Translations under genes and position numbers: made by a program
Shown: in pieces, positions 5,006 through 58,852 of the stretch
Position numbering within the stretch: position 1 is the stretch's first letter
Layout: every line of letters begins with the position of its first letter
Notes under the pieces: generated by a model
What the model saw: the letters and a program-made list of their open reading frames with translations, nothing else
What the model was told of the DNA's origin: nothing
The model's database searches: none
Virus record (IMG/VR): IMGVR_UViG_3300024308_000302
Location: 124,001 to 188,000 of that record
DNA: 64,000 nt
Strand: one strand, 5' to 3'

Positions 5006-5729
5006 ATGTTAAAAAAAATAAAATCGGCATTAAAAGAAAGGAAATACATAACAGTAAAATATGGTGATGAAATGGCAGTTCATTATCCAAAAAAAAGATT
5101 TTCACCAAAAAATGGTATACATAGAAAATTTTATTTAGGTGATGAATTTTGTTCTAATAATACAGATATTAAAATAGGTTTAATGCCTTATTTAGACAAT
5201 GAATTACCAGATTTAATAATAATAGATGAAAAAACCAATCAGTTGACTGAAATGATTTATGTTGTTGATGGTTTAGGATATATCGGAAGAATAGATTGCG
5301 AAAAACCAGCAAAAATAGTAATTAAAGATGGCAAAATAATAAAAGAACAGTATGCAAGATTCGTAAGAAAAAGAGGTGAAAAGAACCATTATTCGATCAA
5401 ATCAAGGATTGCTAAATTTGGAGTAACACAATACACCATACCAGATACAGTGATATACGAAGAAGATGGAAGTATAAATGAAATAGAATCTTTTTGGAGA
5501 TTTGAAGTTGAAAAAGGAAATCAGTTATACGAATTAGATACTGAACTATTATCTTTTGAAAAATATAGATCCTTTAAATTATAAAAAATGGACACAAACA
5601 GAAAGAATATTGGTAAGTATCTATATGGATGTTGAAGTATACAAAGACATTTTTGATAAATTTGATATTGAATGCAGTATAGAAAGTTTTGAAAAAAATA
5701 AAGAACTATTTGAAATGTACTACACTTAA
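5006..5729 (+). CDS. Hypothetical protein, apparently frameshifted (ORF 5006..5584 continues in +1 frame to 5729)
   Basis: GAGG SD; +1 frame open 5538..5729 ending ...KELFEMYYT just before a terminator. Confidence 0.6.
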
Positions 5730-5760
5730 AAAAAAATCCACCCGAAGGTGGATTAGAATA

Positions 5761-5837
5761 TGGTGGATGTAGATGGATTCGAACCACCACCCCGACCCTA
5801 CACAGGCCAGTATACTACCAATTAAGATTATACACCC
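5761..5837 (-). tRNA. tRNA-like RNA with Ala-type acceptor (G3-U70, A73) and aberrant anticodon arm
   Basis: GGGTGTA/TACATCC-ACCA, T arm GGTGG-TTCGAAT-CCATC; 9-nt loop CTGTGTAGG. Confidence 0.6.
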
Positions 5838-5986
5838 ATAGTCGCAGCATTATGCCACTTGACCTTCGCCCCTAACCTACGCTTGGCCCGGATGAACCTA
5901 ATGTTCATCTCCCGTATAAATAGAGCCGGTTCACCCAACCGTTTTATTCAGACACTAAGTCCAAAGCTCTTTAAAACATAATAATT

Positions 5987-6182
5987 TGGTGCCGGAAAAA
6001 GGATTCGAACCTATACTCACCCAGTTAGCATGCCGCCTTCCAAGTAGCTCTCACTTAAATTTTCACTATGTTCAAAAGTAATCGGCCTAATTACCCATTA
6101 CAAAGCTTCCATTTAAGTTCTATGCCGTTCTGGTGATTGATCGATTCACCCACTTGCACAAACCATTGAGACTTATTCCAAC
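5987..6182 (-). ncRNA. 196-nt tRNA-like RNA with a large structured insertion in place of the anticodon arm
   Basis: GTTGGAA/TTCCGGC-ACCA acceptor, AGG-TTCGAAT-CCT T arm, nested internal helices. Confidence 0.6.
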
Positions 6183-6265
6183 ATGTAAAGTGAGAACAAC
6201 AAACAAGCTGAATTTCTTCGCCTTCACTGACGCCATTAACTAGGTCAATGTGTTCTTCTCAAAAC

Positions 6266-6344
6266 TGGTCGGAGTGGCAGGATTCGAACCTGCGACATCT
6301 TGCTCCCAAAGCAAGCGGTATAAGCCGGGCTAACCTACACTCCG
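6266..6344 (-). tRNA. tRNA-Pro(UGG)
   Basis: CGGAGTG...TT-TGG-GA...CACTCCGACCA. Confidence 0.93.
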
Positions 6345-6365
6345 TATCAACTCTTTATGGTGGCC

Positions 6366-6394
6366 ATTATAGCCTAAAACTAGTTAACCGTCAA
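6366..6394 (-). promoter_or_regulatory. Sigma70 promoter for Pro/tRNA-like operon
   Basis: TTGACG-17-TATAAT. Confidence 0.8.
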
Positions 6395-6417
6395 CACCTT
6401 TTTTTAATTATTTTCAA

Positions 6418-7260
6418 TCATTCATGACATTGGTACAAAGCAAAAACAGTATCATCAGGCATAGAAGACATAGTTGTCCAAATAGATTCCAACCAAGCAA
6501 GCTCATCAGCAATTGGAAGTGGGCCAATACAATGAGGTTTTTTATTGATTTCGCCATTAATGATGAACGCATAAGACGCAACTGAATACAGTTCACGAAG
6601 TCTTACAAACAATTCTCGTTCTGGTTCATAATCATAAATGCTTGCATACATAGGGAAAGTGCCTTTCTTCTGCTCTTCCCAAAACTCATCATGAAAAGCA
6701 TCGCCCAAATAGTTATTATGTTTTGCAGCTAACGCATAGAAGGCATCATAATGGCGACCAGCAAATTCACCAGATTCTTTAAAGATGCGTTCAAAATCGA
6801 TATCACCTTTTAAGACCATATCAGCAGTATTCGGGCGAATTACAGTGCCTTTGCGTGGAATACCAGTTTTAATACCAGTTCGACCTTCTTTAACATAATA
6901 GAATCCAGCCCATCCACCACCAAGGGTAAATCCATTGCATTCAGCAAGATCATTTTGGCGTGAAAGAACTTTTTGAACTTGACCAGTATCATCAAGAGTG
7001 TAATACCCATTGTAATGCTCACCATAAGTATCTACTTCTTGGCCGGGTTTAAGCTCATTAATGCACATGTTTTCACATTCATTCAACAAATAATCTGAAA
7101 GAAATCCTTCAAAATCTGCTGGCATTTGAATGCCCAAGTCATACGTAATATCTTTTAGTACCATATAAGGATTAGGCAGTTCTGGAACATGAACACTGGA
7201 ATATTTCAGCATTTGCTGCTCTGGATTATCACCAATCACAGTTACAATAAACGAACCCAT
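6418..7260 (-). CDS. Phage hypothetical protein
   Basis: Start revised to MGSFIVTVIGDNPE (GAGGA SD); LGGGWAG motif. Confidence 0.8.
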   Translation of the reverse strand: MGSFIVTVIGDNPEQQMLKYSSVHVPELPNPYMVLKDITYDLGIQMPADFEGFLSDYLLNECENMCINELKPGQEVDTYGEHYNGYYTLDDTGQVQKVLSRQNDLAECNGFTLGGGWAGFYYVKEGRTGIKTGIPRKGTVIRPNTADMVLKGDIDFERIFKESGEFAGRHYDAFYALAAKHNNYLGDAFHDEFWEEQKKGTFPMYASIYDYEPERELFVRLRELYSVASYAFIINGEINKKPHCIGPLPIADELAWLESIWTTMSSMPDDTVFALYQCHE

Positions 7261-7317
7261 AAGAAAATCCTCATAAAAAATTTGACTGATTATAACATAA
7301 AAATAAGCATATACCAA

Positions 7318-8187
7318 TTAAATAATATGCATATCAAACAAATCTAAATTACTAGTCAAAGTTGTTTTATCTGATGCATAATCTATCCTAAACTTATATA
7401 GAAAACCTTTAAAACCATCAAGTCCATTAATAGCTAAATCATTATATGATGGATAATCATTAAATATATCACTAAATAGATCTGGAAAATCTTCACAACA
7501 TCTCATTATATTTAAAAAACTATTTTCGAAATTCAAATAATCACTTGAATATAATTCTGGTATGTCATTCACACCAAAAATAATAGTCTTATTTGAAAAA
7601 GATGAATTACAAAAAAACTCAATATTAGTAATTGTTTTTTTGTGATCATTCATTGTCTTAACCAAAAAGATAGACGATTTATTAAGAAAGAGAGTCGTCA
7701 AATCTTTTTCTTTAACAGTAGCTGAAAAATCAAAACGTCTTTCGAAATGAGCAGACATAAAATTGAAAGATGCATCTACAGAAATAGAAACATAATTAGT
7801 ATTCATTAGTATAGTGCTTGGTATATTTGAAATATCAAATTTAAATGTTATAAGAAAACGTTGATTTTCAAAAGGCACAGTAGAGTGATATCTTTTTTGC
7901 TTTAACTCACTTTGGTCAGAATAATAATTTGTTTTATTGTCTAAAGAGATATCAACATAATTAATTGTTCCAAGATAGTTGAAATTATATATCCAACGTT
8001 TACTAGAAGAAGCATGGGGGTTATATTTAAATAAAAAATTATCCATAGGGTGCAAAGAACTTGCCGTAATATCACAAGTGAATTCCAATAATGCAAGTAA
8101 CTTTAAATTTATAAACGATTCAAAGTCATCTGCTATATCTATATCATAATGCTCTACATCACATTTTATTGCGTTAAAAATAGACAT
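7318..8187 (-). CDS. Hypothetical protein, C-terminal motif family
   Basis: 289 aa; ends LDLFDMHII. Confidence 0.75.
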   Translation of the reverse strand: MSIFNAIKCDVEHYDIDIADDFESFINLKLLALLEFTCDITASSLHPMDNFLFKYNPHASSSKRWIYNFNYLGTINYVDISLDNKTNYYSDQSELKQKRYHSTVPFENQRFLITFKFDISNIPSTILMNTNYVSISVDASFNFMSAHFERRFDFSATVKEKDLTTLFLNKSSIFLVKTMNDHKKTITNIEFFCNSSFSNKTIIFGVNDIPELYSSDYLNFENSFLNIMRCCEDFPDLFSDIFNDYPSYNDLAINGLDGFKGFLYKFRIDYASDKTTLTSNLDLFDMHII

Positions 8188-8289
8188 AAAATATCCTAAA
8201 AAATTTTGCTAATTATAACATATAACAAATGAAAAAACCATATTAAATATAGTATATCAACCATTTTAATAGAGCAAAAAAAATAAATA

Positions 8290-8496
8290 AAAAAAAGAGC
8301 TATCCATCACTGGAAGCTCTTCTTAAATTAGTGCTGGCTAGCCAGCCTAGTTCCTATTTTTTAAATTTCCCCTCGAAAGGAGCAAAAATGTGTCTACCAA
8401 TTCCACCACCTCAGCATAACTGAGAGAAGGACTCGAACCTTCAAATAAGAACAATCAGGACGTAAACGCGGGAAACAGTCTGGTTGTTGTCTTGAT
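8290..8496 (-). ncRNA. Stand-alone ncRNA containing a circularly permuted tRNA-Leu-like domain (core 8350..8452)
   Basis: Order T arm, loop-closed 7-bp acceptor, Leu-type D arm; enclosed by a 10-bp stem; promoter TTGTCT-17-TACTCT (8503..8531), terminator 8289..8320. Confidence 0.75.
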
Positions 8497-8538
8497 GCTT
8501 ATAGAGTAACAAAAACTAACTATACAGACAAGATATTT

Positions 8539-8763
8539 TTAATTTTTTATGTCCCATTTAGACGAATGGTTGTGGGTAATTTTGAATATGCTAACCATCA
8601 TAATGCAAATGATAGCCTGAACAACAGAAAAAGAAACAACATCTTTAAGAACATCTTGTTTAAATATTGCGGCAAGTCCAAATAAAATAGCAGATATTAC
8701 AACATGACCAAGCACATACATAATCAAATAACGATTAATATTTTTTGGTTCTGGAGCACTCAT
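8539..8763 (-). CDS. Small two-TM membrane protein
   Basis: Hydrophobic segments; GAGG SD. Confidence 0.7.
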   Translation of the reverse strand: MSAPEPKNINRYLIMYVLGHVVISAILFGLAAIFKQDVLKDVVSFSVVQAIICIMMVSIFKITHNHSSKWDIKN

Positions 8764-8857
8764 AATTGAAGCCTCAAAAGTTAAATAAAAAACACTTAAT
8801 CTAAATTGATACTATTATATCAAAACAGAAAAAGTGTTTCAACTGATTTACTTAGAT

Positions 8858-9343
8858 TTAAACCAAAAAGAGTTTTTTCATTTCTGTAATGCGTTCCTCA
8901 GTAAAACTTCGAGCAGAAAATTTATTAGGCTCCGATTCTTTATTTCGAATGAGTGCAGCTTGCTTTTGAAGAACCTCAATTTGCTTCTCGATTTCGTGAA
9001 GCTTGTTAGCGTCATCTATATCAAGATTACGCTGTGCTGTTTCAAATGCATTATTCAAAAATTTCTCAATAAGATGCCTATCATGAACCAAATGATAAAC
9101 AACAGATTGATCTCCAAGACACATACCATTTGCCTGACTGTATACGTCCATTGATGACCAAGACTTTTCACTTACTGGATCAAGCAACGTAACATCTTTA
9201 CTTGTGCTAAATTGATGTTCAGTAATATGCTCAACAACAGAAATTGCATTTTGCATGAATCGTTTAAAATGATAACTGTTATTCCAAAGATACATATCTT
9301 TAAGATTAACTACTTTATCACCAACTTTAAATTTAGTTTCCAT
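8858..9343 (-). CDS. Hypothetical protein
   Basis: KFKVGDKV start, C-terminal coiled coil; GAGG SD. Confidence 0.75.
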   Translation of the reverse strand: METKFKVGDKVVNLKDMYLWNNSYHFKRFMQNAISVVEHITEHQFSTSKDVTLLDPVSEKSWSSMDVYSQANGMCLGDQSVVYHLVHDRHLIEKFLNNAFETAQRNLDIDDANKLHEIEKQIEVLQKQAALIRNKESEPNKFSARSFTEERITEMKKLFLV

Positions 9344-9352
9344 AAATTAACC

Positions 9353-9871: not shown

Positions 9872-9929
9872 AAGCTGTATTATAACAAATTTGAGTTAAC
9901 GAAACAAGAAAAATCAGCCATATGGCTGA

Positions 9930-15014: not shown

Positions 15015-15275
15015 TTATAGCATATTTTTAAGCCAATTACAGAATGTATGTAATTTTGTAGGTCGATCTAGAATTTTTTTGTCTTGAATAGGAGACATCA
15101 CGACAGTGCGGGCAGACCAACCATATTGAGAGCCTTTACAAGTAACATCCAATCCGCCATTTGAATGTGCATAAGTGACAAGTGCATCATCAAACATAGA
15201 GTTATGATGATATTGACGAACTACATCACCAGCAGCAAAAGGTTGTGTAGAAGTTCGTCTTTTATTATCACTCAT
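15015..15275 (-). CDS. Hypothetical protein
   Basis: Overlaps the stop of the upstream gene; GAGG SD. Confidence 0.65.
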   Translation of the reverse strand: MSDNKRRTSTQPFAAGDVVRQYHHNSMFDDALVTYAHSNGGLDVTCKGSQYGWSARTVVMSPIQDKKILDRPTKLHTFCNWLKNML

Positions 15276-16476
15276 AAACTACCTCACTATTAAAAACAGA
15301 AAGAATATTATGTATTTTAGCATATTCTTTGTATGAAATGCGAATTAATTTAATGTCATTTTCTTGGCAATAAGTATTTTTGTATTGATCTCTATATTGG
15401 AGTTCATCAAAACCATTTTCACCACCAAAAAATGTGGTAGGTTCAAAATGTTGTCTACCATCATATTCAATGCAAGTATTAAAAGATGGCAAGTAAAAAT
15501 CAGCTCTCAAATAAGAACCAGTTTTAGGATTTTTGCAGATAGGATACTGCTCAACAAAATCAATGTTATTATCTTTGAAGAATTCTCTAATACGAGATTC
15601 ACCTTTTGAAGAACGGCAAACTGGGCAACCTTTACCAGAAGCATGACAACGTGAACGTTGCATAAAAATACCATGTTTTCTGCAATTGATGGCAACTTTT
15701 GTCTTAAAGTTAACATAAACAGTCTTGGAATAATCATACAGATCTCCATGAATCTGTTTGAATTCATCAATCAATGATTCAGTAGTAACTACAGGATAAC
15801 TTTTATTTGACTGTGCGGCTTTAATCACACCACATTTTTGACAACCAGCACCTTGTATATGATTGGTAACTCTTTGTTCAAAAGAACCATGCTCTTTACA
15901 AACAATAGTAACAACCTGTTTAATATTTTTATAAGAATGAATATTGGAATAATCATATGCATAATTATGAACAAGATTGAATTTTTCAATCAAACTATTC
16001 AGTGTATAGATAGTAGTAACTTGTTTATCAGGAACTGAAATTAATTTTTTAGGTTGGTTTTTTTTATTAGAATACTTAATTCCCGACAATATAGCCTTAA
16101 TTACACCACAATGTGGGCAACCATACCCTTGAATATGCTGATCGGCTCTTTGTTCAAAAGAACCATGTGTTTTGCAAATGATAATAACTTTAGAACGTAC
16201 ATTTTCAAAAACGACATTTGAATAATCATAGATGTTTGAATGAACAGATTCAAATTTTTCAAGCAGTGTTTCTAATGTATAGCGACGATTACTTTGAGCA
16301 CATACAGGACATCCACGGCCTTTGCAATGAGTCTCAACAGTTTTGAAGAAAGATCCATGTTTGTGACAAATGATTTCTACTTTAGCTGTATGATTTACAT
16401 AATTAACATTAGAGTAATCATAGAGATCACCATGCAATGCTTTGAAACGTTCAATGACAGATTCAGTAGTATTCAT
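15268..16476 (-). CDS. Homing-endonuclease-like protein (four DUF723-type zinc-ribbon repeats plus PD-(D/E)XK/Vsr-like nuclease)
   Basis: Four YDYS...ICxxHG...GCPxC repeats; C-terminal RADFYLP...IEYDGRQH. Confidence 0.85.
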   Translation of the reverse strand: MNTTESVIERFKALHGDLYDYSNVNYVNHTAKVEIICHKHGSFFKTVETHCKGRGCPVCAQSNRRYTLETLLEKFESVHSNIYDYSNVVFENVRSKVIIICKTHGSFEQRADQHIQGYGCPHCGVIKAILSGIKYSNKKNQPKKLISVPDKQVTTIYTLNSLIEKFNLVHNYAYDYSNIHSYKNIKQVVTIVCKEHGSFEQRVTNHIQGAGCQKCGVIKAAQSNKSYPVVTTESLIDEFKQIHGDLYDYSKTVYVNFKTKVAINCRKHGIFMQRSRCHASGKGCPVCRSSKGESRIREFFKDNNIDFVEQYPICKNPKTGSYLRADFYLPSFNTCIEYDGRQHFEPTTFFGGENGFDELQYRDQYKNTYCQENDIKLIRISYKEYAKIHNILSVFNSEVVYE

Positions 16477-18644: not shown

Positions 18645-19997
18645 TTAATTTGTAATTACTGCGTGAATCTTCTTCTTTTCAACATTTTCTGGATTTTCAT
18701 GGTCATGTTTTTCTGCTTCAACATGAGCATTATTTGGGTCTTCATCTTTATCAAACAAGAGATTAACCAACTTACCAACAGTCAAACCTTGAATCAGAAT
18801 GGAACCCAGTACAATCACATAAGTCAGCGGAAGCAGAATGTCTTTTTCAGGGCTTGGCGGAAGTGCCAGAACAAGAGCAATCGACACGCCACCACGTAGA
18901 CCACCCCAAGCCAACAATGCTGCACTACCTTTGCCAAAGCCTGTTTCTTTACGAATGCCTTTCATGACAGCCAAAGGCGGAATAACAGTAAGAAGACGGC
19001 TCAGAACCAGCACCACAAAGAGAGTTATAGCAATAACAACATGCAGAACCCCAAACTGTACAACCAAAAGTTCAAGACCAATCAGAGCGAACAACACCCC
19101 GTTCAAGAATTCATCAATTACATGCCAGAAACTATCAACTACACGGTGTGTATCGTCATTCATATGTTTGAATGGCTTGTAACCAAGGCAAAGACCAGCA
19201 ACAACAATTGCCAATGGAGAAGATACATGAATGAAGCTTGCAAGAGTAGCACCACCAACAACCATCATCAAAGTAACCATTACAGCAATGTGTGCTTCAT
19301 GAATAGTTTTAAGCAATCCAACAGTCAACATACCAAGAGCAAGACCATAAGCAATACCACCAACAGCTTCTTGCAAGAACAACATAGATACAGAGCTAAG
19401 GGTTGGTTCACCACCAGAAACAATCAAAGCGAACAAGATAGTAAAGGCAACGATAGCAGTACCATCATTAAACAGTGATTCACCTACAATCGTCACACGA
19501 AGGTTCTTAGGAGCACCAGCTTTGCGAAGAATACCCATAACAGCAATAGGGTCAGTAGGGCTAATCAATGCACCAAACAGGAAGCAATAAAGAATGTTAA
19601 CCTTGAAGTTAAGAGCAGTCAGAACCTGATACGTACAAAAGCCAATGACAACAGTTGCAATCAGAACACCCAAAGTAGCCAAGCCTGCAATAGCCCATTT
19701 ATGAGTTTTCAAATCACTTACGTTAACTGTCAAACATCCTGCAAAAAGCAATGCAGGCAGAATCCAGACCATCAACAATTCATGAAAATTAATCTTGGAA
19801 ATCATGTCAATTGCAGCTTCTTCCAAGAATGGATATCCAAGTTTGCTGGCAGTAAGGATGACAACACTCATCATCAGAGAGCCAAACATCACACCAATGG
19901 CATGTGGTAGTTTGAAAAATTTGTAATTTAGATATGTCATGAGAGTAGTAATGCTCATAAAGACAGCCACAACTGTCAACATTTGATCTGGTTTCAT
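18645..19997 (-). CDS. nhaP: Na+/H+ antiporter, CPA1 family
   Basis: LPALLFAG, ISPTDPIAV, GESLFNDG, WGGLRGGVSIAL; many TM segments. Confidence 0.92.
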   Translation of the reverse strand: MKPDQMLTVVAVFMSITTLMTYLNYKFFKLPHAIGVMFGSLMMSVVILTASKLGYPFLEEAAIDMISKINFHELLMVWILPALLFAGCLTVNVSDLKTHKWAIAGLATLGVLIATVVIGFCTYQVLTALNFKVNILYCFLFGALISPTDPIAVMGILRKAGAPKNLRVTIVGESLFNDGTAIVAFTILFALIVSGGEPTLSSVSMLFLQEAVGGIAYGLALGMLTVGLLKTIHEAHIAVMVTLMMVVGGATLASFIHVSSPLAIVVAGLCLGYKPFKHMNDDTHRVVDSFWHVIDEFLNGVLFALIGLELLVVQFGVLHVVIAITLFVVLVLSRLLTVIPPLAVMKGIRKETGFGKGSAALLAWGGLRGGVSIALVLALPPSPEKDILLPLTYVIVLGSILIQGLTVGKLVNLLFDKDEDPNNAHVEAEKHDHENPENVEKKKIHAVITN

Positions 19998-20825: not shown

Positions 20826-21428
20826 TTAAAACACCATCATTTTAAAAATCTCAAGACGTTCTGTAAATGACTCTGAATTGAAATCATACACACCGTATTC
20901 AAAAAATTCAGGAAACAACTGTCCAACATCATCGTTTTTACTACTGGTGTATAATTTTGCATACAAAAATAAGATTTCGTTACCAGTAAAATCAAAATTG
21001 TGAAAATCAGAGCCATAAGAAGTTACAAAATCTTGTTTAGTCACTTCAAAATTAGCATTCATTTCTGTTCTTGAAATGAGATATGGAGGCTTATTGACTG
21101 GAGTTAAATTTGAAAAAAACAAATAAGTTGGTTCAAAATCATTAATGAACTTTATTGTCATCTTCGCACTTGGAGTGTCCATAAACTTCAAAGGATTAAA
21201 GTTGACTTTAAACCTTAATGGTTCTTTAGGAACAGCATTGACTTTTGGACAAGCAGGGCGATTAAAGTGGCTGAAAATTCGTTCAGCCGCTTCATTGTTT
21301 TTTGAAATAATATATTCATCGACATAAGAAATTGATTCAACAGAATCAGAATCTTGCTCATGATAGGAAGATATTGCCTGAGTTAGTGAACGATTGGAAT
21401 TATCCCAATACATATCAGTGAGCCTCAA
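20826..21428 (-). CDS. Hypothetical protein, C-terminal motif family
   Basis: Ends FPEFFEYGVYDF...LEIFKMMVF. Confidence 0.75.
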   Translation of the reverse strand: MRLTDMYWDNSNRSLTQAISSYHEQDSDSVESISYVDEYIISKNNEAAERIFSHFNRPACPKVNAVPKEPLRFKVNFNPLKFMDTPSAKMTIKFINDFEPTYLFFSNLTPVNKPPYLISRTEMNANFEVTKQDFVTSYGSDFHNFDFTGNEILFLYAKLYTSSKNDDVGQLFPEFFEYGVYDFNSESFTERLEIFKMMVF

Positions 21429-21827: not shown

Positions 21828-22472
21828 CTAATAATTAGCGAATCTCAACAATTCAAGTCTCTGTTGTATATCATTACTCTCAAATACCCAAGCACCATGA
21901 TTATGATATTCTGGAAAAATCTCTTTCATGAATGGATTGTTATAATTAACAAATAGTTCAATAAGTATTAACTCATCTTTAAAATTGGCAATCATAGACT
22001 GATCTTTTGTCAATAAAAAATTAAAAACAGAATCAGTTGAATATTCACGCCTCCAATATCGATAAGAAATAGAAATCAAATTACATTTTGAATCGAATTC
22101 TAAACATAAAGGTTGACGAATATAGCATAAACTATTTTCAAAAGATACTATAGTTGAAATTGAATAAGTATTTACTTCATCATTTTTAATAAATACTTTA
22201 TGTTCATTGTTAATTAGACCAAAAGACTCAATAACTGGAATTATATTTGGTGGACTTTTCAATATATATGAAGAACCAACATCAGAAGAGTTAATTATAA
22301 GTGGCAATCGATAATCAAATTTATCACAAAAAGAAATTTGATATCGGTCAGAAAATTTAATATGAAAATCTTTTATAAGATCAATGGCTTTGAAAGAATT
22401 ATTTAACTCTTTTGGCGGTATATTATGCACAGATTTTTTATATTTCTGATACATAGAAGAAATAGTTAGCAT
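21828..22472 (-). CDS. Hypothetical protein, C-terminal motif family
   Basis: Ends FPEYHNHGAWVF...LELLRFANY, TAG stop. Confidence 0.75.
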   Translation of the reverse strand: MLTISSMYQKYKKSVHNIPPKELNNSFKAIDLIKDFHIKFSDRYQISFCDKFDYRLPLIINSSDVGSSYILKSPPNIIPVIESFGLINNEHKVFIKNDEVNTYSISTIVSFENSLCYIRQPLCLEFDSKCNLISISYRYWRREYSTDSVFNFLLTKDQSMIANFKDELILIELFVNYNNPFMKEIFPEYHNHGAWVFESNDIQQRLELLRFANY

Positions 22473-24460: not shown

Positions 24461-25189
24461 TCAACAACTTTTGTTCATACCAACAAGTTCATAACAGTCA
24501 GACAAATTGGTATCTTTAATGTATTCTCTAAAAGGTACTTCATTAGTAGAGATAGCTTCATCTAAAGCCATCTTAACATCAACATCTGTATAATAATTAA
24601 ACAAAACATAGAATGCTTGAATTCTGTTTTCAACTGTGAACTTTTTTAAATCTTCAATTTGATAACGATCATTATGAAATGGAGCTTGAAATTCAACATC
24701 AATGTAATTGAAATCCAAATCAAATTTAACTTGATAATGAACATTACGCTTCGAAACATATGAGTGCTTAGAGAAACACATAACAATATTTTGAGTAGTA
24801 TCATTCATTCGAATATAGAAATCAATAAGAACAGAAGTCATCATTTCTTCGAGAAGAAATGCACCTAACTGGTCTTTCATCTTTTTCCGACCTGATTTAA
24901 ACCAAGGATGCTGCAGCACAAACTTCTCATCATCAGTCAAATTTGAAAAATCAGAACGAATTAAAACCGCACAAAAATTATGCTTGCTTTTTTCGATATC
25001 AAGGCCAAAACAAGCATCACCATTATGTGCAGCAACATACTTAAATAAAGTTCGTTCAACATTATTTTGTTTAAAAAGAATGGTATTTCGTTTCATGAAA
25101 ATATTTGGATGACCATCATCAGAGTCAATTGATGCAACAATTGTGTCATACAATGTTTTAGCAAATGTTTTATTTTTCATGATAAACAC
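24461..25189 (-). CDS. Hypothetical protein, C-terminal motif family
   Basis: VERTLFK...NGD...HPWFK...FDLDFN; ends ELVGMNKSC. Confidence 0.78.
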   Translation of the reverse strand: MFIMKNKTFAKTLYDTIVASIDSDDGHPNIFMKRNTILFKQNNVERTLFKYVAAHNGDACFGLDIEKSKHNFCAVLIRSDFSNLTDDEKFVLQHPWFKSGRKKMKDQLGAFLLEEMMTSVLIDFYIRMNDTTQNIVMCFSKHSYVSKRNVHYQVKFDLDFNYIDVEFQAPFHNDRYQIEDLKKFTVENRIQAFYVLFNYYTDVDVKMALDEAISTNEVPFREYIKDTNLSDCYELVGMNKSC

Positions 25190-34081: not shown

Positions 34082-35125
34082 CTAAATTTCAATCATTTCA
34101 AGCAGAGCAACATCCTCTTTTGTAAGTGTATTTGTTTCAAAAGGGATATCTAATAGGCTTTTCACTTCTCTAGTTGGCATATACATTAAAGTTAATTGTT
34201 TAATATAATCTAAAAAATATATTCTATAATATTGAAAGCTTAAATCACAATTTAAATTATTAAAATCGATCTTTAATTCAATTGATTCATCAAATAAAAC
34301 ATTGCAATCATGTTCCTCATGATAATTTATAACGACTGTTTCAATGAAACTTGTTTGCAAATTAGAATCAATGTGCCACATAATATTGATAAATGACTCA
34401 AAACCAATATGGCTTGCAGTAGTGTTGATTTTAAAATATAAGATAAAAGAGCTTTTTGATACAGATTCTAATAAAAGAGGTTTATCAATAATGAATTTCC
34501 CATGTCTTTTGAGATTACCTACTTCAGAATCAGTCCACTGCAAAACTTGTTCAATATAACGAATTAAAGATAAAGCCTTGCAACTGTCATCTGTAAATTT
34601 CAATTCATTTGAAATATGGCCTGCATTTTTATAAGCATCATCTTTATACGTGCCAATTAGTAAAGATGTCTTTTCATTGTTGTAACAAATAAAATAAGTA
34701 TGTAAATTAAAATAATGTTTGTTTTTTCTTAGATTAAAATTATCAAGATCTCCATAAACAATAGTTTCAATAGATGGAAGCATTTTTGAAAATACATAAC
34801 TATCAAGTTGCTTATAATAAATGAAATTTTTATACATGTAATTGTAAATGAATTTCTTTTTTGAAAACTTAAAGCTATCAGGTAAAATTGAATGATTATT
34901 AGCAACTAAGGCATCATTAAAAAGAACATAAGTATGACAAAAGGTAGTAGATATATCAGACTGCTTAATAAAACTTAGAAAAATATCAAACCCATTAACA
35001 TGATAAGAATAAGTTTCATAGTACATAGCAGAAGCTGTCGAAATAGTTTTAGTGATTTTTTTGTTATCGATGATTAAAGAATGAAAATTTAGATTGTTCT
35101 TAACATAACGAATAATATTAAACAT
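34082..35125 (-). CDS. Hypothetical protein, C-terminal motif family
   Basis: Ends VALLEMIEI, TAG stop. Confidence 0.75.
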   Translation of the reverse strand: MFNIIRYVKNNLNFHSLIIDNKKITKTISTASAMYYETYSYHVNGFDIFLSFIKQSDISTTFCHTYVLFNDALVANNHSILPDSFKFSKKKFIYNYMYKNFIYYKQLDSYVFSKMLPSIETIVYGDLDNFNLRKNKHYFNLHTYFICYNNEKTSLLIGTYKDDAYKNAGHISNELKFTDDSCKALSLIRYIEQVLQWTDSEVGNLKRHGKFIIDKPLLLESVSKSSFILYFKINTTASHIGFESFINIMWHIDSNLQTSFIETVVINYHEEHDCNVLFDESIELKIDFNNLNCDLSFQYYRIYFLDYIKQLTLMYMPTREVKSLLDIPFETNTLTKEDVALLEMIEI

Positions 35126-39040: not shown

Positions 39041-39117
39041 TGGTACAGTCAGGAGGATTTGAACCTCCAACCTTCCTCGGCAAAATGAGGATGCTCCACC
39101 CATTGAGCTACAACTGT
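39041..39117 (-). tRNA. tRNA-like RNA with 8-nt anticodon loop (AUUUUGCC), identity undetermined
   Basis: ACAGTTG/TGACTGT-ACCA, intact D and T arms, stem TCCTC/GAGGA. Confidence 0.65.
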
Positions 39118-40990: not shown

Positions 40991-41725
40991 TTAAAATTCT
41001 GCCATTTCAAGGACAGACATATCTGTTTTCAACAAATTTAAGTTTTCACCATACGTATTCATCCAATTTAATAAAAATTTAACAAAACTAACAATATCTT
41101 GATTTACAATTGATGGATGACTTCCCTCAAAAACCTGATAAAAACTATCATTAGCCCTATGATATTTTGACATAAAATAATTGAAGTAATAATGAACATC
41201 TTTGTTATAAACAAAAAATTGTGATAATTCTGGAAGTTTATTAAGTTTGAATTTTATTAATGGATCTTCTGCAATATGCCAATACATCAGAATAGAAAGA
41301 TGGGCGTCTTTATCAAACGAATAATGAATATCTATACAACTTAGTGCAAAATTATCATGAGAATGTTGAACACCACCAATAGTATAGCTATTTTTAGCAA
41401 TTGCTGATAAATAGTTAAAATTATTATCAACATTGATAGTGACATTATAAAAGAATGAATTAATTCCTTTAAATAAGTTATCATGATCGAAGTTAAAAGA
41501 AACTTGTAAATTGTCTTCATAGAGAAGAACAATTACATAACCATAAGGATATTCATATTCTAATCCATAGTTGCTATGGGCACAATTAAATGAAAAATCT
41601 TTTGAACAAACATCAATAGAACAAACCTTATTGAGTAAAAATGAAAGTTGTTGCCTGATAAACTTGTGATGCTCACCAGACAACTTTAGATTATTTCTTT
41701 TGAAATCAGAAAACAGTGACATCAA
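40991..41725 (-). CDS. Hypothetical protein, C-terminal motif family
   Basis: Ends MSVLEMAEF. Confidence 0.72.
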   Translation of the reverse strand: MMSLFSDFKRNNLKLSGEHHKFIRQQLSFLLNKVCSIDVCSKDFSFNCAHSNYGLEYEYPYGYVIVLLYEDNLQVSFNFDHDNLFKGINSFFYNVTINVDNNFNYLSAIAKNSYTIGGVQHSHDNFALSCIDIHYSFDKDAHLSILMYWHIAEDPLIKFKLNKLPELSQFFVYNKDVHYYFNYFMSKYHRANDSFYQVFEGSHPSIVNQDIVSFVKFLLNWMNTYGENLNLLKTDMSVLEMAEF

Positions 41726-47554: not shown

Positions 47555-48550
47555 TTAAATAGAATACATACTGAGCAACATTAAAGTGTCTTCTGACAGT
47601 GGCAATGCAGGTGAAATATCAATCTCTTTTAACATTCTAATCGTTTGCATTGATGGGTATCTTGATAAACAATAATTATATCTGGACATGTAAACTTTTT
47701 TAAATTTATTTACATAGTCAATATAATCATTATTGAGGTACTGTTTATATTGAATAGATAATGTACCAGACTCATATGTTATAATCATGAATCTATCATA
47801 AGATTTAACAGAAGAGTCTGACTTATCACTATCAGATGGATGATGTTCAACAATAAGCTCATACTTTCGTCCATTTTTATACAACAAACATGGATTGTAG
47901 TCATTTTTAAGAATTCTAACTTTTTTTGTATCAATGTATTTTTCAAAACTAATAGCTATATCACGCACAGCTTCCATTGATGTAAAATCACTGAATCGGC
48001 CAACTTCAAAAATCAACTTATCAGCAATATAAAAGTGAGCTTTATTTAAGATGGAACCTGTTTTTGAAAGTAGACAAAAAGAGATACGCTCAACACCAGT
48101 AACAACTGTTTTTTGTAATATTTTAATTTCTGGATAATAATTTTCATCTAAAGTAAGTAAGTTAGGGACTTTAGATAAACTTTGAGAATCGTTGCCTGTC
48201 AATAAGTCCATTAAATCTGGATGATTGTTAAACACGCCTACATAACGATTTTTTAAATAAGGAAAAACAGAAGAATCCATTGTTAAAAGTATGTTTTTAT
48301 TAATACATTCCATAATGAAATCTTGATGATTTAAAGATGATTCATACTTCATACAATAATCCATAGAAACTTGACTAACAAAATCTTTTATACTTAAAAA
48401 TAAGAAGCCATCTAAAAATGTAGCGTTAGCTAATAGATTATTATTTAATTTCAATGAATAGGAATTATTAGTAAATTCTTTAATAGAAGATACAACTGAA
48501 TCTACGTCCTCTTTTTTCTTGAAATAATCCTTTAACTTATTTAAAAACAT
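47555..48550 (-). CDS. Hypothetical protein, C-terminal motif family; paralog of 57692..58852
   Basis: Ends PS...PLSEDTLMLLSMYSI. Confidence 0.75.
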   Translation of the reverse strand: MFLNKLKDYFKKKEDVDSVVSSIKEFTNNSYSLKLNNNLLANATFLDGFLFLSIKDFVSQVSMDYCMKYESSLNHQDFIMECINKNILLTMDSSVFPYLKNRYVGVFNNHPDLMDLLTGNDSQSLSKVPNLLTLDENYYPEIKILQKTVVTGVERISFCLLSKTGSILNKAHFYIADKLIFEVGRFSDFTSMEAVRDIAISFEKYIDTKKVRILKNDYNPCLLYKNGRKYELIVEHHPSDSDKSDSSVKSYDRFMIITYESGTLSIQYKQYLNNDYIDYVNKFKKVYMSRYNYCLSRYPSMQTIRMLKEIDISPALPLSEDTLMLLSMYSI

Positions 48551-52915: not shown

Positions 52916-52936
52916 ATTGTTTCTCCACGATTAATT

Positions 52937-53305: not shown

Positions 53306-53439
53306 AATAACCTCTACACCTTATCCGTTGATTGGATGTGTAGTATAACAATATTCTGAAACATGGTCAATCATTAATGATGCGGATTATAGCAAAATTT
53401 TCTCAAAGTTAGCAAGTTAATTCTGTGATTTTGGAGCAG

Positions 53440-54051: not shown

Positions 54052-54204
54052 AATTATAATGTAATCATTTTGATATTAGTTTAAGTGAAAAGAATGAAAA
54101 AATCAAATATCAAAACAATACATTACAAAAAATATCATATAACAAATTGTATTATTTTAAAATAGATATATAATGATAAATATATATAATAATTTGGGTG
54201 CGAC

Positions 54205-54972
54205 ATGAATAAATCAAAATTAAGTTTCCCAGCAATAGTTGTTTGTATGTTAAGTTACAATGCTTCAAATGCAGCATATGTAGCAAAAGTTCCATTAGAG
54301 ATTCCACAAGGTGGATCGCTACCATATAATAGTATAATAATTGGTTCAGGTAATAAAGAATTAGATTTCGATCCACCTGATCCATTACCCACAGATGATG
54401 GTGTTGTATGCGAATACAATCTAACCAATTCTCCTAATATATCTGTTTATACAGATGGAATAATGAAGAGTCCTGATAATGAATGGATATCCTATAAGGA
54501 GATTTATTATCAAGGACAAAAAGTAATCAATGCTTTTAAAGGCAAAGAAATATTTAGACAAAATGATGAAATGTATAATATAGGTTACTATGAAGTATGT
54601 ATACAAGGTTCTCCATTATATAGTAATCAAAATAATGAAGTAGAAAATCAAGAATGGGATCAAGATGATTGTAGATATAATAACGAAACGGGAACTCAAT
54701 ATTCTTGGACTACCACCACTACAAGTGATGGTAGATATGCATTCCTGAATGCAAGTCTAGGAAGCTTTGGATATGTTACAGCAAATAGTAGTAATATAAT
54801 ATTCCCAGTAGGTACTATAACTGTACCAGAGGGAAAAATATTACCAGAAGGAAAGCAAAGAATAATAATAGGGAACACTGCATTTGATAGAGGTAACTAT
54901 TATGGATCTGTAAATATAGGTAATAATGTTTTCCAAAGCAAATATGAAGTATGTAAAAAAACAGGAAAATAA
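54205..54972 (+). CDS. Secreted protein, K(I/V)PLE family
   Basis: Signal peptide then AYVAKVPLEIPQGGSLPYNSIIIG; two C..YN..YEVC modules. Confidence 0.8.
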   Translation: MNKSKLSFPAIVVCMLSYNASNAAYVAKVPLEIPQGGSLPYNSIIIGSGNKELDFDPPDPLPTDDGVVCEYNLTNSPNISVYTDGIMKSPDNEWISYKEIYYQGQKVINAFKGKEIFRQNDEMYNIGYYEVCIQGSPLYSNQNNEVENQEWDQDDCRYNNETGTQYSWTTTTTSDGRYAFLNASLGSFGYVTANSSNIIFPVGTITVPEGKILPEGKQRIIIGNTAFDRGNYYGSVNIGNNVFQSKYEVCKKTGK

Positions 54973-55004
54973 AAAAAGCCATCAAAAGATGGCTTTCTTA
55001 TTAA

Positions 55005-55358
55005 TCATGTTTCGTTATCTTTTAAAATTTGACATAGCCAGCTTGATGCATCATTAAGATGAGATTCACCAGCGTCAATTTCATCCAGAAGCTTTCGGAA
55101 AGTATCAATATCGTTACAGCGTTCTTTTCGTGTATTTGTAAGCAGTTCAATAGCATCCGCTTTACCAGTTAGATCATCTGGTGATGAACTAAGCGTTGTC
55201 AGAACTCGATCAATACTAATTAAGTCATCACGAACTTTTTTGTAAAGCTTATCAATTGTTTGTCGAATTTCATATAATTTGAAATTAGATTTACCAACAA
55301 GATCATTTGATTCTTTAATAGCTTTTAGTACAAGTTTTTGCATGAATGATAACTCCAA
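55005..55358 (-). CDS. Hypothetical helical protein
   Basis: 117-aa ORF. Confidence 0.65.
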   Translation of the reverse strand: MELSFMQKLVLKAIKESNDLVGKSNFKLYEIRQTIDKLYKKVRDDLISIDRVLTTLSSSPDDLTGKADAIELLTNTRKERCNDIDTFRKLLDEIDAGESHLNDASSWLCQILKDNET

Positions 55359-55574
55359 TTAAATAATAGTCTCAAATCTATCAGAAATGTGATAACCATT
55401 AAGTTTAAGCCAATGTTTAATTTTCCCAGAGTCGTGCTCATGAAAAGTTTGTAATTGCTTGGTTCTCTCAGCATCCCAAAGAATAAAAAGACCTGAGCCG
55501 TATGAAGCAAGATATTCCAGACAAGCTGGTGTTGTGATTGGTTTTGAAAAAATAGATAGGAATTTTTTAAACAT
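55359..55574 (-). CDS. Hypothetical protein
   Basis: Start revised to MFKKF (AGGAG SD); the track extension overlaps tRNA-Leu(CAA). Confidence 0.7.
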   Translation of the reverse strand: MFKKFLSIFSKPITTPACLEYLASYGSGLFILWDAERTKQLQTFHEHDSGKIKHWLKLNGYHISDRFETII

Positions 55575-55609
55575 ATTTATTGAAACTCCTTTAGGTATTA
55601 TTTGAAAAT

Positions 55610-55693
55610 TGGTGCCCAAGGTCGGACTCGAACCGACACGTCTTTCGACAGAGGATTTTGAATCCACCGCGTCTACCATTCCACCACTCGGGC
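55610..55693 (-). tRNA. tRNA-Leu(CAA)
   Basis: GCCCGAG...TT-CAA-AA...CTTGGGCACCA. Confidence 0.93.
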
Positions 55694-55839
55694 TAAAAAT
55701 TCTACCCGCTGCGTAAGCTAAAAGCGTCCTCACACTGAAACACAAGTGTTAATGGCGATTTTGCTATTAACTTGCAACACACTAGTCAATTCGGTGTCCA
55801 ATGAGATTGGATTCAGCAAATTGAACGGCGTAGAAAAAC

Positions 55840-55914
55840 TGGTGCTAAGGACGGGATTCGAACCCGTGACCATCGGATTTAGAGGCCGTTGCTCTGCCGC
55901 TGAGCTACCAAAGC
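55840..55914 (-). tRNA. Amber suppressor-type tRNA(CUA), copy 1
   Basis: Loop CT-CTA-AA; acceptor GCTTTGG/CCTTAGC, ACCA. Confidence 0.85.
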
Positions 55915-55980
55915 ATGTTATTACTATCACTTGTTTTGTTGAGCCATTATACAACAAGACCCAACAAGAAACAAGTATTT

Positions 55981-56328
55981 TTATCGTTTAATTGCGACTT
56001 CCGTATCCCAATCCACTTCAACTCGCTGATTTTCATCGAAATCATAAAGACCTTCATGTCCAGATATTGATTCAATGTAAAGAGTTCGTTCACCACCTCG
56101 CCAACGAGCACTCCAGCTATCAGTATCAAAAATATCAATCAGAATATCTTTTAATGTAGGATACTTTTGTTTAAAAGACTTCCAACTCTTGTCAATCAGG
56201 ATTTCATCAACATGACCACCATTATTACCGAGTTCGGTGGCCCTCATGATACATTGATATTTTTTTGTGCCACGAATTCTGGTTTCTTCAAAGGTTATAT
56301 CTAAACCAATTTCTTCATTCAGAGCCAT
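55981..56328 (-). CDS. Hypothetical protein, YPxLK paralog family
   Basis: EETRIRGT...SWKSFKQKYPTLKDIL...GHEGLYDF. Confidence 0.8.
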   Translation of the reverse strand: MALNEEIGLDITFEETRIRGTKKYQCIMRATELGNNGGHVDEILIDKSWKSFKQKYPTLKDILIDIFDTDSWSARWRGGERTLYIESISGHEGLYDFDENQRVEVDWDTEVAIKR

Positions 56329-56351
56329 AGCAAAATCTCCATGTATAAATT

Positions 56352-56428
56352 TGGTGGGACTTGTAGGACTTGAACCTACGACCTGCCGATTATGAGTCGG
56401 ACGCTCTAACCAACTGAGCTAAAGTCCC
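56352..56428 (-). tRNA. tRNA(CAU), probably Ile2 (lysidine, reads AUA)
   Basis: GGGACTT acceptor; CGA-CTCATAA-TCG and TTCAAG resemble ileX. Confidence 0.85.
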
Positions 56429-56434
56429 GTAATT

Positions 56435-56845
56435 TTACATCAAACTATCAGCATAAAGCTTTTTGTGTTGATCTACAACACAACCAAAAGAATCTTCATA
56501 CAGATAAACAGATGATTTAATGGTTTCAATTGGTCTTGCCAACTCTGAATACATCAAAGTGTCAACACGATATCCACCACGCCCATTTTTACCTTTCCAA
56601 AGCTCCCAAACAAGTACAGCAAGCGTACCAATTTTGAAAACTTTTTCAGGTTTAAAGCTGCTCACATAATCTACACAACCAAAACCAGCAGCTATATGAA
56701 CTTTAATACCTTTTGGATTAACCTTTACTACAGTGCCAGAACATAACGAATAATCAATTAAGACTTTAACATCATCACCAATAGACAATGTTTTAGTTTC
56801 AATAATTTGTTTGATATGTTCTTCATATAGCATAATGTTATCCAT
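56435..56845 (-). CDS. Hypothetical protein
   Basis: WELWKGKNGRGGYR motif. Confidence 0.75.
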   Translation of the reverse strand: MDNIMLYEEHIKQIIETKTLSIGDDVKVLIDYSLCSGTVVKVNPKGIKVHIAAGFGCVDYVSSFKPEKVFKIGTLAVLVWELWKGKNGRGGYRVDTLMYSELARPIETIKSSVYLYEDSFGCVVDQHKKLYADSLM

Positions 56846-56848
56846 AAT

Positions 56849-56923
56849 TGGTGTTAAGGGTGGGATTCGAACCCACGACCATCGGCTTTAGAGGCCGCTG
56901 CTCTACCGCTGAGCTACCAAAAC
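56849..56923 (-). tRNA. Amber suppressor-type tRNA(CUA), copy 2
   Basis: Loop CT-CTA-AA; acceptor GTTTTGG/CCTTAAC, ACCA. Confidence 0.88.
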
Positions 56924-56968
56924 ATTTATTCTATAAATAAGATACAATTAAAGCATATTTATATAAAC

Positions 56969-57053
56969 TGGTGCCCGGTGCCAGACTCGAACTGGCACGA
57001 CTTTCGCCGGAAGATTTTAAGTCTTCTGTGTCTACCGATTTCACCAACCGGGC
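56969..57053 (-). tRNA. tRNA-Leu(UAA) copy 5
   Basis: GCCCGGT/ACCGGGC; CT-TAA-AA. Confidence 0.95.
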
Positions 57054-57331
57054 GTAAAAAATGAATTAAAAATTTGCGTGTGTCGAACTTAACTTTACAA
57101 CACAATCTGATTTACCCAGAGCCTTAGCTAGCCCTGTCTTCACAAGAAGAAAACACACCTAACTCTACAAGAAGTCAGATTTGGTAACTGAATACCTGTG
57201 AAACCATATTGTTGTAAAATAATATCCTTTTTTTCAACCCCTTCGTTTGGGCTGTCAACGTAACATCCGCTGAATAACACCTATATACCTGCAACTGGAT
57301 ATAGTTACAACTTTTTAACTCATTGCAAAAC

Positions 57332-57417
57332 TGGTGCCCGAAGCCGGACTCGAACCGGCACTCCGATTAAGGAAAGGGATTTTAAGTCCCCCGCGTCTAC
57401 CATTTCACCACTCGGGC
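57332..57417 (-). tRNA. tRNA-Leu(UAA) copy 6
   Basis: GCCCGAG...CT-TAA-AA...TTCGGGCACCA. Confidence 0.95.
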
Positions 57418-57586
57418 TTAAATAAAACATCAATATGGTCTACTCTATTTATGTTCGCACCGAGTAGTTTTCCATACTTACAAGCTATATTGGCAACCGA
57501 AGCTGTTATTCCAAAACAAGCCACTTGTAAGAAGTGCTGTTTCATTGCTGCAAGATTTTGTATCTCCGTTTCGTCTTGATGGGCCT

Positions 57587-57615
57587 ATTATAAAGAAGGT
57601 GACATACAAGGTCAA
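57587..57615 (-). promoter_or_regulatory. Sigma70 promoter for Leu/amber tRNA operon
   Basis: TTGACC-17-TATAAT; leader CATCAAGACG shared with the promoter at 2836. Confidence 0.8.
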
Positions 57616-57691
57616 GTGTTTTTTTTGTTTATTTTTCAAATATTTATCGAAAAAATCTTTGACAAAATCTTAAAGAATATGTTAAGGATAA

Positions 57692-58852
57692 TCAAACAAC
57701 AAACATGTCCACGACCATTAAATCATCTTGATTCAAAGGTGTATCTGTTGAAAGTCCCAAATTATCTAATTTTTCTAGGACAGAAAAAGATGGATGAAAT
57801 GACTTGAAATAGTCAAGTTTATTCACAATGACATTATTAATTGACATTTCATGCTCTTTAACCATATCCAAAGTAAATTTTGAAGACGATTTTTTTAATT
57901 TTCCGTAAAAATAAGTATAAGTAACTAATCTATCATTCTTATATCTAATCAAAGGTGTTTCTTTATTCAAAAGACTTTGCCGGAAATTTGAATAGCTGGG
58001 GCTTTCATCAAGAGCACTGGTGTATTCATTAAATTTTGTAATATAGCTTACAGAAAAAACACGATTTGTTTTTCTAAATAAGCAATATTGATTATCTAAC
58101 GTTTTTAAAACCCGAATATTCTCAAGATTTAAATGCTTCAAATAAAACTCTTTTTTACCTTTTAATTGATCGTTAATACCTTCACGAGTATCCACATCAG
58201 CTAAAAATGAAAAAGGACTTGAAACTATCGTTGATGTAAAGAATGATTCAAAATCACTCAGATGAAAAATATTATTATCAACATAATAATAAACAACAGG
58301 ATCAGTTTTTACTTGATCATTATCATATATAGAATAAAAACTATATTTGAAAATATTTTTTAAAATTTTTTTTCTTTTGAAATAAATAATCTGATATTTT
58401 TTATGTTCCCGATAAATATGTGAATGATATTTATCAAAATCATATCTTTTATGAAATTTAGTTGTTTTTTTCACCAATTGATACATATGTTTAAGATGAT
58501 TATCAAAAGGAGTTTGATGAAAAGACTTAAAAAAACCATTATGGAAATTAACAAAGTCAATTAAATTTCTTTTTGGGATTTTAAATAGAATATTATTTTT
58601 AATGGTATCAACAACAAAATCATCTAAAGATAGTTGACTATCATCCATAGGAGTTGCATAGTTTATTTTTAGAAGTTTTCCTAGCTCATCATGTTGGATT
58701 GTGACATACATAATACGATCATCAAAATCAATAAATGCTTTCAAACCATTATTTGCATTGACATCGTAACGACAGTCACCCAGTTGAGTCACAAAAAAAT
58801 CTGGCTCACTGTATAAACAAATATTTAAAAAGTTAATAAGTTTATGGAGCAT
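57692..58852 (-). CDS. Hypothetical protein, C-terminal motif family
   Basis: Ends PS...PLNQDDLMVVDMFVV. Confidence 0.75.
   Translation of the reverse strand: MLHKLINFLNICLYSEPDFFVTQLGDCRYDVNANNGLKAFIDFDDRIMYVTIQHDELGKLLKINYATPMDDSQLSLDDFVVDTIKNNILFKIPKRNLIDFVNFHNGFFKSFHQTPFDNHLKHMYQLVKKTTKFHKRYDFDKYHSHIYREHKKYQIIYFKRKKILKNIFKYSFYSIYDNDQVKTDPVVYYYVDNNIFHLSDFESFFTSTIVSSPFSFLADVDTREGINDQLKGKKEFYLKHLNLENIRVLKTLDNQYCLFRKTNRVFSVSYITKFNEYTSALDESPSYSNFRQSLLNKETPLIRYKNDRLVTYTYFYGKLKKSSSKFTLDMVKEHEMSINNVIVNKLDYFKSFHPSFSVLEKLDNLGLSTDTPLNQDDLMVVDMFVV

Follow-up and report, generated by a model that had tools for sequence, protein, structure and literature searches.

Why should a dozen or so small proteins with little else in common, encoded within one stretch of DNA, all finish in the same few residues, and what might read such an ending? 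The stretch in question (the window, 64,000 nucleotides in length) comprises positions 124,001 to 188,000 of the IMG/VR virus record IMGVR_UViG_3300024308_000302. A prediction made previously from the letters of the window listed about 12 divergent proteins with a shared C-terminal tail and proposed that the tail was a docking or targeting helix on variable N-terminal bodies, such as a capsid-packaging or ejection signal or a handle for one shared hub. Our analysis indicates that the tail is real and that its general interpretation as a putative terminal handle on modular effectors stands, but in the probable setting of a bacterial chromosome rather than that of a phage. We give a probability of about 0.4 to the reading that the tail serves as a C-terminal translocation signal, specific to this lineage, for a type IVB secretion system whose genes lie on the same chromosome.

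Evidence for a genuine motif comes from the whole record (290,157 bases, 32% G+C), from which a set of 422 open reading frames (ORFs) of at least 80 residues was taken. Translation gave, on the minus strand and with the same stop positions, exactly the 11 intact C-termini listed in the original prediction. Of the 12 listed tails, 10 do have methionine at position -4 (the last residue being -1), whilst in the gene at 21828 it is replaced by phenylalanine and in that at 24461 it lies one place out of register; across the record, 38 of 45 tails have methionine at -4. The consensus can be written h(-9) x L/V/I(-7) h(-6) x M(-4) h(-3) x h(-1)-COOH, where h is hydrophobic and x is any residue. Upstream of this lies an acidic, T/S-capped element, h-[TS]-x-x-D, and further upstream again L-[GN]-I, so that the conserved module as a whole spans some 30 residues: the end of a helix, L-[GN]-I, a short linker, the h-[TS]-x-x-D cap and the terminal helix motif.

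The strict pattern is found at 29 of the 422 C-termini, where 0.4 would be expected from its internal frequency. Similarly, when a 14-residue matrix was scored leave-one-out against a background of 70,609 internal windows, 28 of the 422 C-termini reached 10 bits or more (about 0.02 expected) compared with three of the internal windows, and 33 C-termini reached 8 bits or more (0.08 expected). These counts rule out composition as the source of the motif. The earlier figure of about 12 tail proteins, whilst pointing to something real, is an undercount: by eye, approximately 45 ORFs of the 290-kilobase (kb) record carry the tail, mostly at genome 190-290 kb and hence outside the window, and one further tail gene is located just beyond the end of the record, bringing the total to at least 46. 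Those in the window are as follows.

5006..5729, plus strand: broken tail-bearing gene ending KELFEMYYT; ORF 5006-5584 stops early and a second frame runs to the stop at 5727-5729
7318..8187, minus strand: tail-bearing orphan of 289 residues ending LDLFDMHII; 10.2 bits; no Pfam or PHROG match
20826..21428, minus strand: tail-bearing orphan of 200 residues ending LEIFKMMVF; 16.0 bits
21828..22472, minus strand: tail-bearing orphan of 214 residues ending LELLRFANY, with Phe in place of Met; 8.8 bits
23644..24393, minus strand: marginal member of 249 residues ending SDIVEMALL; -1.7 bits; paralogue of 24461..25189
24461..25189, minus strand: doubtful member of 242 residues ending YELVGMNKSC, with Met out of register and a polar end; -5.8 bits
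26775..27542, minus strand: tail-bearing orphan of 255 residues ending VDLLDMSKI; 13.0 bits; paralogue at genome 226256-227017
34082..35125, minus strand: tail-bearing orphan of 347 residues ending LTKEDVALLEMIEI; 21.2 bits, the top match to the consensus in the window
40991..41725, minus strand: tail-bearing orphan of 244 residues ending MSVLEMAEF; 8.1 bits
47555..48550, minus strand: tail-bearing orphan of 331 residues ending LMLLSMYSI; 16.7 bits
49524..50165, minus strand: tail-bearing orphan of 213 residues ending IEALKMILI; 16.1 bits
57692..58864, minus strand: tail-bearing orphan of 390 residues ending LMVVDMFVV; 10.6 bits; distant paralogue of 47555..48550

Nine of the 11 intact members are robust (8.1-21.2 bits). 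The two marginal ones are paralogues of each other and 24461..25189 is counted solely on that account. The protein encoded at 20826..21428 belongs to a subfamily with a longer C-terminal module, FPE..G.Y..S..F..RL (dots denoting any residue), whilst 21828..22472 has paralogues at genome 242912-243559 and 282093-283055. At the remaining gene, which had been described as frameshifted, KELFEMYYT is encoded at window 5700-5726 on the plus strand in a frame that differs from that of the upstream ORF, so that the gene is broken in the assembly; we have kept the two pieces unjoined. That description is borne out in so far as the tail exists in another frame and the contigs of the source run have the same sequence, but other samples are too divergent to decide the matter. 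The spot, which takes in the broken gene, is strain-variable: contigs from other samples have 450-610 bases of unrelated sequence in place of window 4968-5731, between nearly identical flanks.

At the DNA level, information is concentrated in the second codon positions and in the ATG codon, leucine is specified by all six of its codons, and there is no conservation downstream of the stop codon. This pattern points to selection on the peptide and rules out a DNA-level element, such as a promoter, terminator or recombination site overlapping the gene ends. The genes themselves are diverging quickly, being 30-55% identical in a syntenic relative in which neighbouring genes are 60-93% identical, and have a G+C content of 27% compared with 34%. 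Homologues were found solely on a few metagenome contigs (three and nine matches among 5.8 billion proteins); orthologues at 36-55% identity all retain the tail pattern, and those of 47555..48550, at 36-89% identity, retain PL..DTL.LLSMY.I.

The bodies that carry the tail are, as originally claimed, mostly not alignable. No real Pfam or PHROG match was seen in 43 tail proteins, and BLAST and phmmer comparisons amongst the tail proteins revealed small clusters only (of 5, 3, 3, 3, 2 and so on). Once the last 16 residues had been stripped, eight of 990 member pairs were still detectable; profile iteration on the tail proteins brought in no additional recruits, and an hhalign comparison of the bodies of two subfamilies returned a probability of 0.2%.

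AlphaFold models were made for two subfamilies. In the first, the tail is detached and has a predicted local distance difference test (pLDDT) score of 36-47, compared with approximately 88 for the body; in the second, that of 47555..48550, a confident body is followed by a detached tail whose last 20 residues score below 50. Both bodies consist of repeated beta-meander-plus-helix units with a long helix preceding the tail. Foldseek searches of the PDB, AlphaFold database (AFDB) clusters and the ESM Atlas found no match with a template modelling (TM) score above 0.3 for either model, and the two share one weak AFDB match; an Atlas feature search on a tail yielded nothing usable. Given the shared units, a very old common ancestry of the modelled bodies may be envisaged. 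With the tails unpacked in both models and the bodies lacking profile similarity, however, the motif does not appear to be simply the last helix of one shared fold.

Could the whole family nevertheless have arisen by a single, huge and ancient lineage-specific expansion of paralogues, the tail being its slowest-evolving remnant with no separate addressing role? For subsets this is partly true, as the clear paralogous clusters attest. That the shared module is about 30 residues long and not just nine, that the genes are clustered and that both modelled bodies are built of beta-meander-plus-helix units and have a weak match in common can also be read in this way. As an account of the family as a whole it is nonetheless improbable, in view of the eight detectable pairs in 990, the empty profile iteration, the hhalign result and the failure of the tail to pack against either body. 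In addition, a detached terminal peptide that is under strong purifying selection in 46 diverged genes, and in more than one species, must still have a function of its own. A terminal docking or targeting element on variable bodies, by contrast, is well matched by a tail that is strictly terminal, selected at the protein level, kept by orthologues, detached in the models and independent of the body; the part of the original idea that did not survive is the phage frame, with capsid packaging or ejection and a phage hub.

The reason for this lies in the surroundings of the record. Although IMG/VR classes it as a provirus, exact-protein look-ups place it at positions 268,255-558,411 of a 1,539,155-base contig of the Joint Genome Institute (Ga0247725_1000001). 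A contig of the same length occurs in a second sample, rotated and oriented differently, so that the 1.54-Mb contig is probably a closed circle. Before the start of the record come small co-oriented ORFs over some 4 kb, then a lytic transglycosylase and then a genuine FtsZ (366 bits to its best solved relatives, which we take to be gammaproteobacterial FtsZ entries in the PDB). Beyond its end, a tail gene is followed on the other strand by genes for HMG-CoA reductase, UbiA, a PEP-utilising enzyme and an AMP-binding enzyme. Within the record, a six-frame search of all 290 kb found no Terminase_6N, no capsid, portal, terminase, sheath or baseplate PHROG was matched among 80 of the larger non-tail ORFs and the 43 tail proteins, no gene for a virion tail was found and no ORF exceeds 633 residues. 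Most likely, then, the window is not phage DNA but part of the chromosome of a gammaproteobacterium that has a small genome and is probably host-associated. The 290-kb provirus is probably a misclassified chromosomal effector island, having shown no virion gene and having been cut from a contig that also carries FtsZ, metabolic genes and a type IVB system. Capsid packaging, ejection and a phage hub accordingly lose their footing.

Canonical sigma-70 promoters of the form TTG-N17-TGnTATAAT occur at 135 sites on the gene strand of the record and at 24 on the other. Many of its genes form separate promoter-gene-terminator units. The gene content includes eukaryote-like genes (MYG1, NAGPA, Nudt16-like, RLIG1 and Bax1-I) and conflict genes (WHH and colicin-type nucleases accompanied by SUKH-1, Acb1-like phosphoesterases, DEDDh exonucleases and an eleven-member family related to pentapeptide-repeat proteins).

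The type IVB cluster is located on the same contig 4-45 kb from the start of the record and is of the IncI/R64-like kind, with a thin pilus. Following FtsZ, the gene order is PilS pilin, DotD, TraI, a DotB-like ATPase, IcmT, a secretin and pilus ATPases, and then an ankyrin protein, a DotM/TrbA homologue (DotM_C, E=2e-49), a DotO-like ATPase, two DotI-family proteins, DotH and DotG; domain matches in the cluster are to DotD, T4SS_TraI, T2SSE ATPase, IcmT, DotI (twice), DotH, TrbI/DotG and DotM_C. A PilV-like shufflon pilin of the same system is encoded inside the record, and relatives of the DotM homologue with 68% identity are found on contigs of 1.07-1.86 Mb. The ankyrin-repeat protein beside the DotM homologue is 224 residues long and has no tail (L097:12274-12948, minus strand). 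The cluster is interrupted by an integrase-like gene (L097:4313-5326).

The composition of the tails is distinctive. Positions -1, -4 and -7 contain no Asp or Glu at all and are 91-93% hydrophobic, whilst positions -18 to -10 are 16-42% acidic; over their last 20 residues the tail proteins have a net charge of -2.1, compared with +0.2 in other ORFs. Because it is function-agnostic, strictly terminal, flexible and conserved on many unrelated bodies, the tail has the character of an address label. We propose that the signal would consist of the flexible linker and a short acidic-hydrophobic helix at the free carboxyl terminus, and that it would mark at least 46 rapidly diversifying orphans as substrates of an IncI/Dot-Icm-like type IVB system. 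A substrate-recruiting coupling complex, either of the DotL/DotM type or with an LvgA-like adaptor, would read the tail, and the proteins would then be exported into a target cell, whether a protist host or another bacterium. As a candidate for the hub, the substrate-recruiting complex of the type IVB system is more likely than a phage component. The eukaryote-like and conflict genes of the island, and the ankyrin protein beside the DotM homologue, also speak for this reading. A stronger version is more tentative, namely that the crisp address peptide h-[TS]-x-x-D-h-x-L-h-x-M-x-x-h-COOH feeds at least 46 orphan effectors to the IncI-like machine by way of a receptor site unlike the DotM/E-block mode of Legionella, and would thus represent a new, consensus-type code.

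Type IV systems are known to read C-terminal signals, an example being the type IVA signal of Xanthomonas (PMC10025392). In Dot/Icm substrates, the very C-terminus is hydrophobic and depleted in Asp and Glu, which are enriched upstream (PMC12981334, PMC5802825). The tails resemble the signals of Dot/Icm effectors from Legionella, Coxiella and Rickettsiella, in which an acidic E-block upstream is read by DotM, in several respects: both lie at the extreme C-terminus, within the last 20-35 residues and outside the folded body, and are unstructured, with a hydrophobic end from which Asp and Glu are excluded and acidic enrichment 10-18 residues upstream, both are found on many unrelated, AT-rich and fast-evolving orphans, and both occur in genomes encoding a Dot/Icm-type machine with DotM. 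They differ in having a sharp consensus in place of a compositional bias and in lacking a Glu block, and the machine here is IncI/R64-like with a thin pilus and a DotM without four of the five basic residues that bind Glu peptides. A closer precedent for a defined motif is FxxxLxxxK, which occurs at the C-terminus of some Legionella effectors and is read by LvgA, an adaptor of the coupling complex, according to a passage of PMC12981334 that cites Kim et al. 2020. As with this motif, the tail is a short defined C-terminal sequence on otherwise unrelated effectors, but the sequence is a different one with no Lys, it is anchored to the last residue, and LvgA is reported in Legionella only. BID domains are C-terminal recognition elements of Bartonella effectors. 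Both BID and the XVIPCD of Xanthomonas type IVA effectors combine a conserved C-terminal recognition element with variable N-terminal effector domains (PMC10025392 for Xanthomonas), as the tail proteins would do; these domains are folded, run to about 100 residues or more and are read by VirD4 of type IVA systems, however, whereas the tail is a flexible peptide of 14-30 residues in a type IVB context.

A number of results weigh against export by this system. The cluster of tail genes occupies 44-291 kb, counted from the start of the record, and does not lie beside the secretion machine, and neither a DotL/TrbC coupling ATPase nor an adaptor of the IcmS/IcmW/LvgA type was found in the 60 kb examined. 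Co-folding of DotM's cytoplasmic domain (residues 140-415) with the tail of 34082..35125 gave a score of 0.01, rated by the tool as 'no answer'. At the positions of Legionella R196, R197, R217 and R315, the DotM found here has N, E, N and E, with R314 kept; if DotM is the reader, the binding mode, judged by these residues, is different from that in Legionella. It has been proposed that DotM-type platforms co-evolve with different tails in each lineage (PMC5802825), a suggestion that the altered residues fit whilst proving nothing. The tail itself is far sharper than any described Dot/Icm signal and is Asp-rich, its acidic residues being mainly single Asp or Glu with no run of Glu, so that it has no Glu-rich E-block. 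With the tail profile, 33 sites are recovered from the record itself but only one from 401 sampled genomes of a gammaproteobacterial class, 85 of them with DotM, which makes the code lineage-specific. Another secretion system or hub may be encoded elsewhere on the 1.54-Mb genome, beyond the stretch read. Finally, the island holds phage-like items (a T4-type RNA ligase, HNH, many tRNA genes, Acb1-like), and for this reason a large integrated mobile element is a possible origin for it.

What would follow if the tail is a type IVB signal? Such signals are fuzzy, with the result that effector repertoires are guessed by machine learning. The tail would be a new, consensus-type form of a known kind of signal: a crisp terminal consensus from which a lineage's whole effector set could be read directly, a defined peptide for locating the receptor on the coupling complex and a test of the idea that DotM-type platforms and tails co-evolve (PMC5802825). 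There is a practical lesson too, in that what a virus database lists as a 290-kb provirus is probably an effector island of a chromosome. The tail family has no match in any described family or motif, and a literature search for a described tail family in jumbo phages produced nothing relevant.

Amongst the alternatives to a secretion signal, the tail might serve as a docking motif for a cytoplasmic hub unconnected with export, most concretely the sliding clamp, tethering its carriers to DNA-loaded clamps. The C-terminus of RB69 DNA polymerase, SLFDMFDF, falls in register with the tail (L at -7, F at -6, D at -5, M at -4, F at -3 and F at -1); with 5.0 bits over its final nine residues, it ranks within the top 0.13% of windows, and this peptide has reportedly been crystallised bound to the RB69 sliding clamp. 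T4 gp43 (SLDFLFG) and gp55 (SLDFLYEAND) end in the related SLDFL[FY], and these tails, like those described here, are flexible acidic-hydrophobic peptides at the extreme C-terminus, the usual presentation of clamp motifs. The RB69 match is modest, however, and concerns a single candidate, the T4 tails score below zero, and clamp tails are carried by replication and transcription proteins, whereas the 45 orphan carriers have no DNA-enzyme domain. Furthermore, neither a T4-type clamp (DNA_PPF), a beta clamp (DNA_pol3_beta_3; six frames) nor a family B polymerase was found in the 290-kb record. We think a clamp-docking role unlikely.

The tail might instead be a C-terminal degron for a protease or unfoldase, whether of the Clp, Lon or FtsH type or one of two trypsin-like peptidases whose genes lie in the record, its carriers being short-lived proteins or adaptors that drag targets to destruction. 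A free hydrophobic C-terminus that is disordered in the models and serves as a function-agnostic label on unrelated bodies would suit such a role; the record also encodes two paralogues matching Trypsin_2 and a PHROG protease. Nothing ties these peptidases to the tail, however, and methionine at -4 within a conserved module of 14-30 residues more closely resembles a specific helix-in-groove contact, whereas known bacterial C-degrons are short non-polar ends. That 46 fast-evolving genes should be kept just for the destruction of their products is a further assumption, and we judge this explanation to have little chance of being correct.

Terminal cargo signals of protein shells, such as the T4 capsid-targeting sequence, the encapsulin cargo-loading peptide and the encapsulation peptides of microcompartments, likewise use a short terminal peptide on a flexible linker to send unrelated proteins to one site, but the record showed no gene for a shell, capsid or scaffold, and the T4 signal is N-terminal and cleaved. 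A giant phage that loads tail-tagged proteins into its capsid and ejects them with its DNA, in the manner of T4 internal proteins or encapsulin cargo, is accordingly very improbable and for this record largely refuted: the provirus class, the co-oriented genes, the many tRNA genes, the T4-type RNA ligase, HNH, Acb1-like and endolysin-like genes and the principle of terminal cargo peptides all speak for it, but six frames of the record gave no Terminase_6N, 80 of the larger non-tail ORFs and the 43 tail proteins gave no capsid, portal, terminase, sheath or baseplate PHROG, no ORF exceeds 633 residues, the region runs on within the 1.54-Mb contig into genes for FtsZ, the type IVB system, the pilus and metabolism, and about 135 canonical sigma-70 promoters drive it. 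Searches of IMG/VR and GenBank phages found no relatives, and Ralstonia phage RsoM2USA has only the RNA ligase in common.

Two other sources of a reader for the tail were considered. A tetratricopeptide-repeat receptor, suggested by a neighbouring gene in a relative, was rejected, there being no orthologue here. The record also contains two paralogous two-gene orphan cassettes (480-498 plus 628-633 residues; genome 209584-212924 and 230593-233972), each flanked by tail genes. These were set aside as hub candidates, with no match in Pfam, PHROGs or PDB sequences.

Several further features of the island deserve mention. Its 290 kb encode about 45 tRNAs, those of the window lying at 1975-59600; a small number of anticodons recur many times (Leu-UAA about 10, Met-CAU about 8, Arg-UCU 5) and match the A/T-ending codons of the AT-rich island, together with an odd call with a four-base anticodon at window 39041-39117. 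Two tRNA genes with a CUA anticodon lie on the minus strand at window 55840-55914 and 56849-56923; they are amber-suppressor-like and are called Pyl by ARAGORN. If TAG is recoded, ORFs become only a little longer. Amid the orphans, at window 18645-19997 on the minus strand, there is a complete gene for a Na+/H+ exchanger (E=1e-59). A large HNH homing-endonuclease-like gene (PHROG E=2.5e-82) lies at 15268-16476 on the same strand, and a PepA-type M17 aminopeptidase is encoded at genome 190065-191459; a PepA scan did not place the host lineage. Elsewhere in the record are TnpB/IS605-type genes and a transposase of 585 residues. Finally, the eleven-member BLAST family related to pentapeptide-repeat proteins has three members in the window (54205-54972 on the plus strand, 62572-63231 and 63297-63908 on the minus strand) and eight more in the record. 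Pentapeptide repeats are clear in one member, and several of the proteins have a C-terminal pattern of their own, E-F/L-x-x-I/V-G-V/I-x-I/T-x-L/M.

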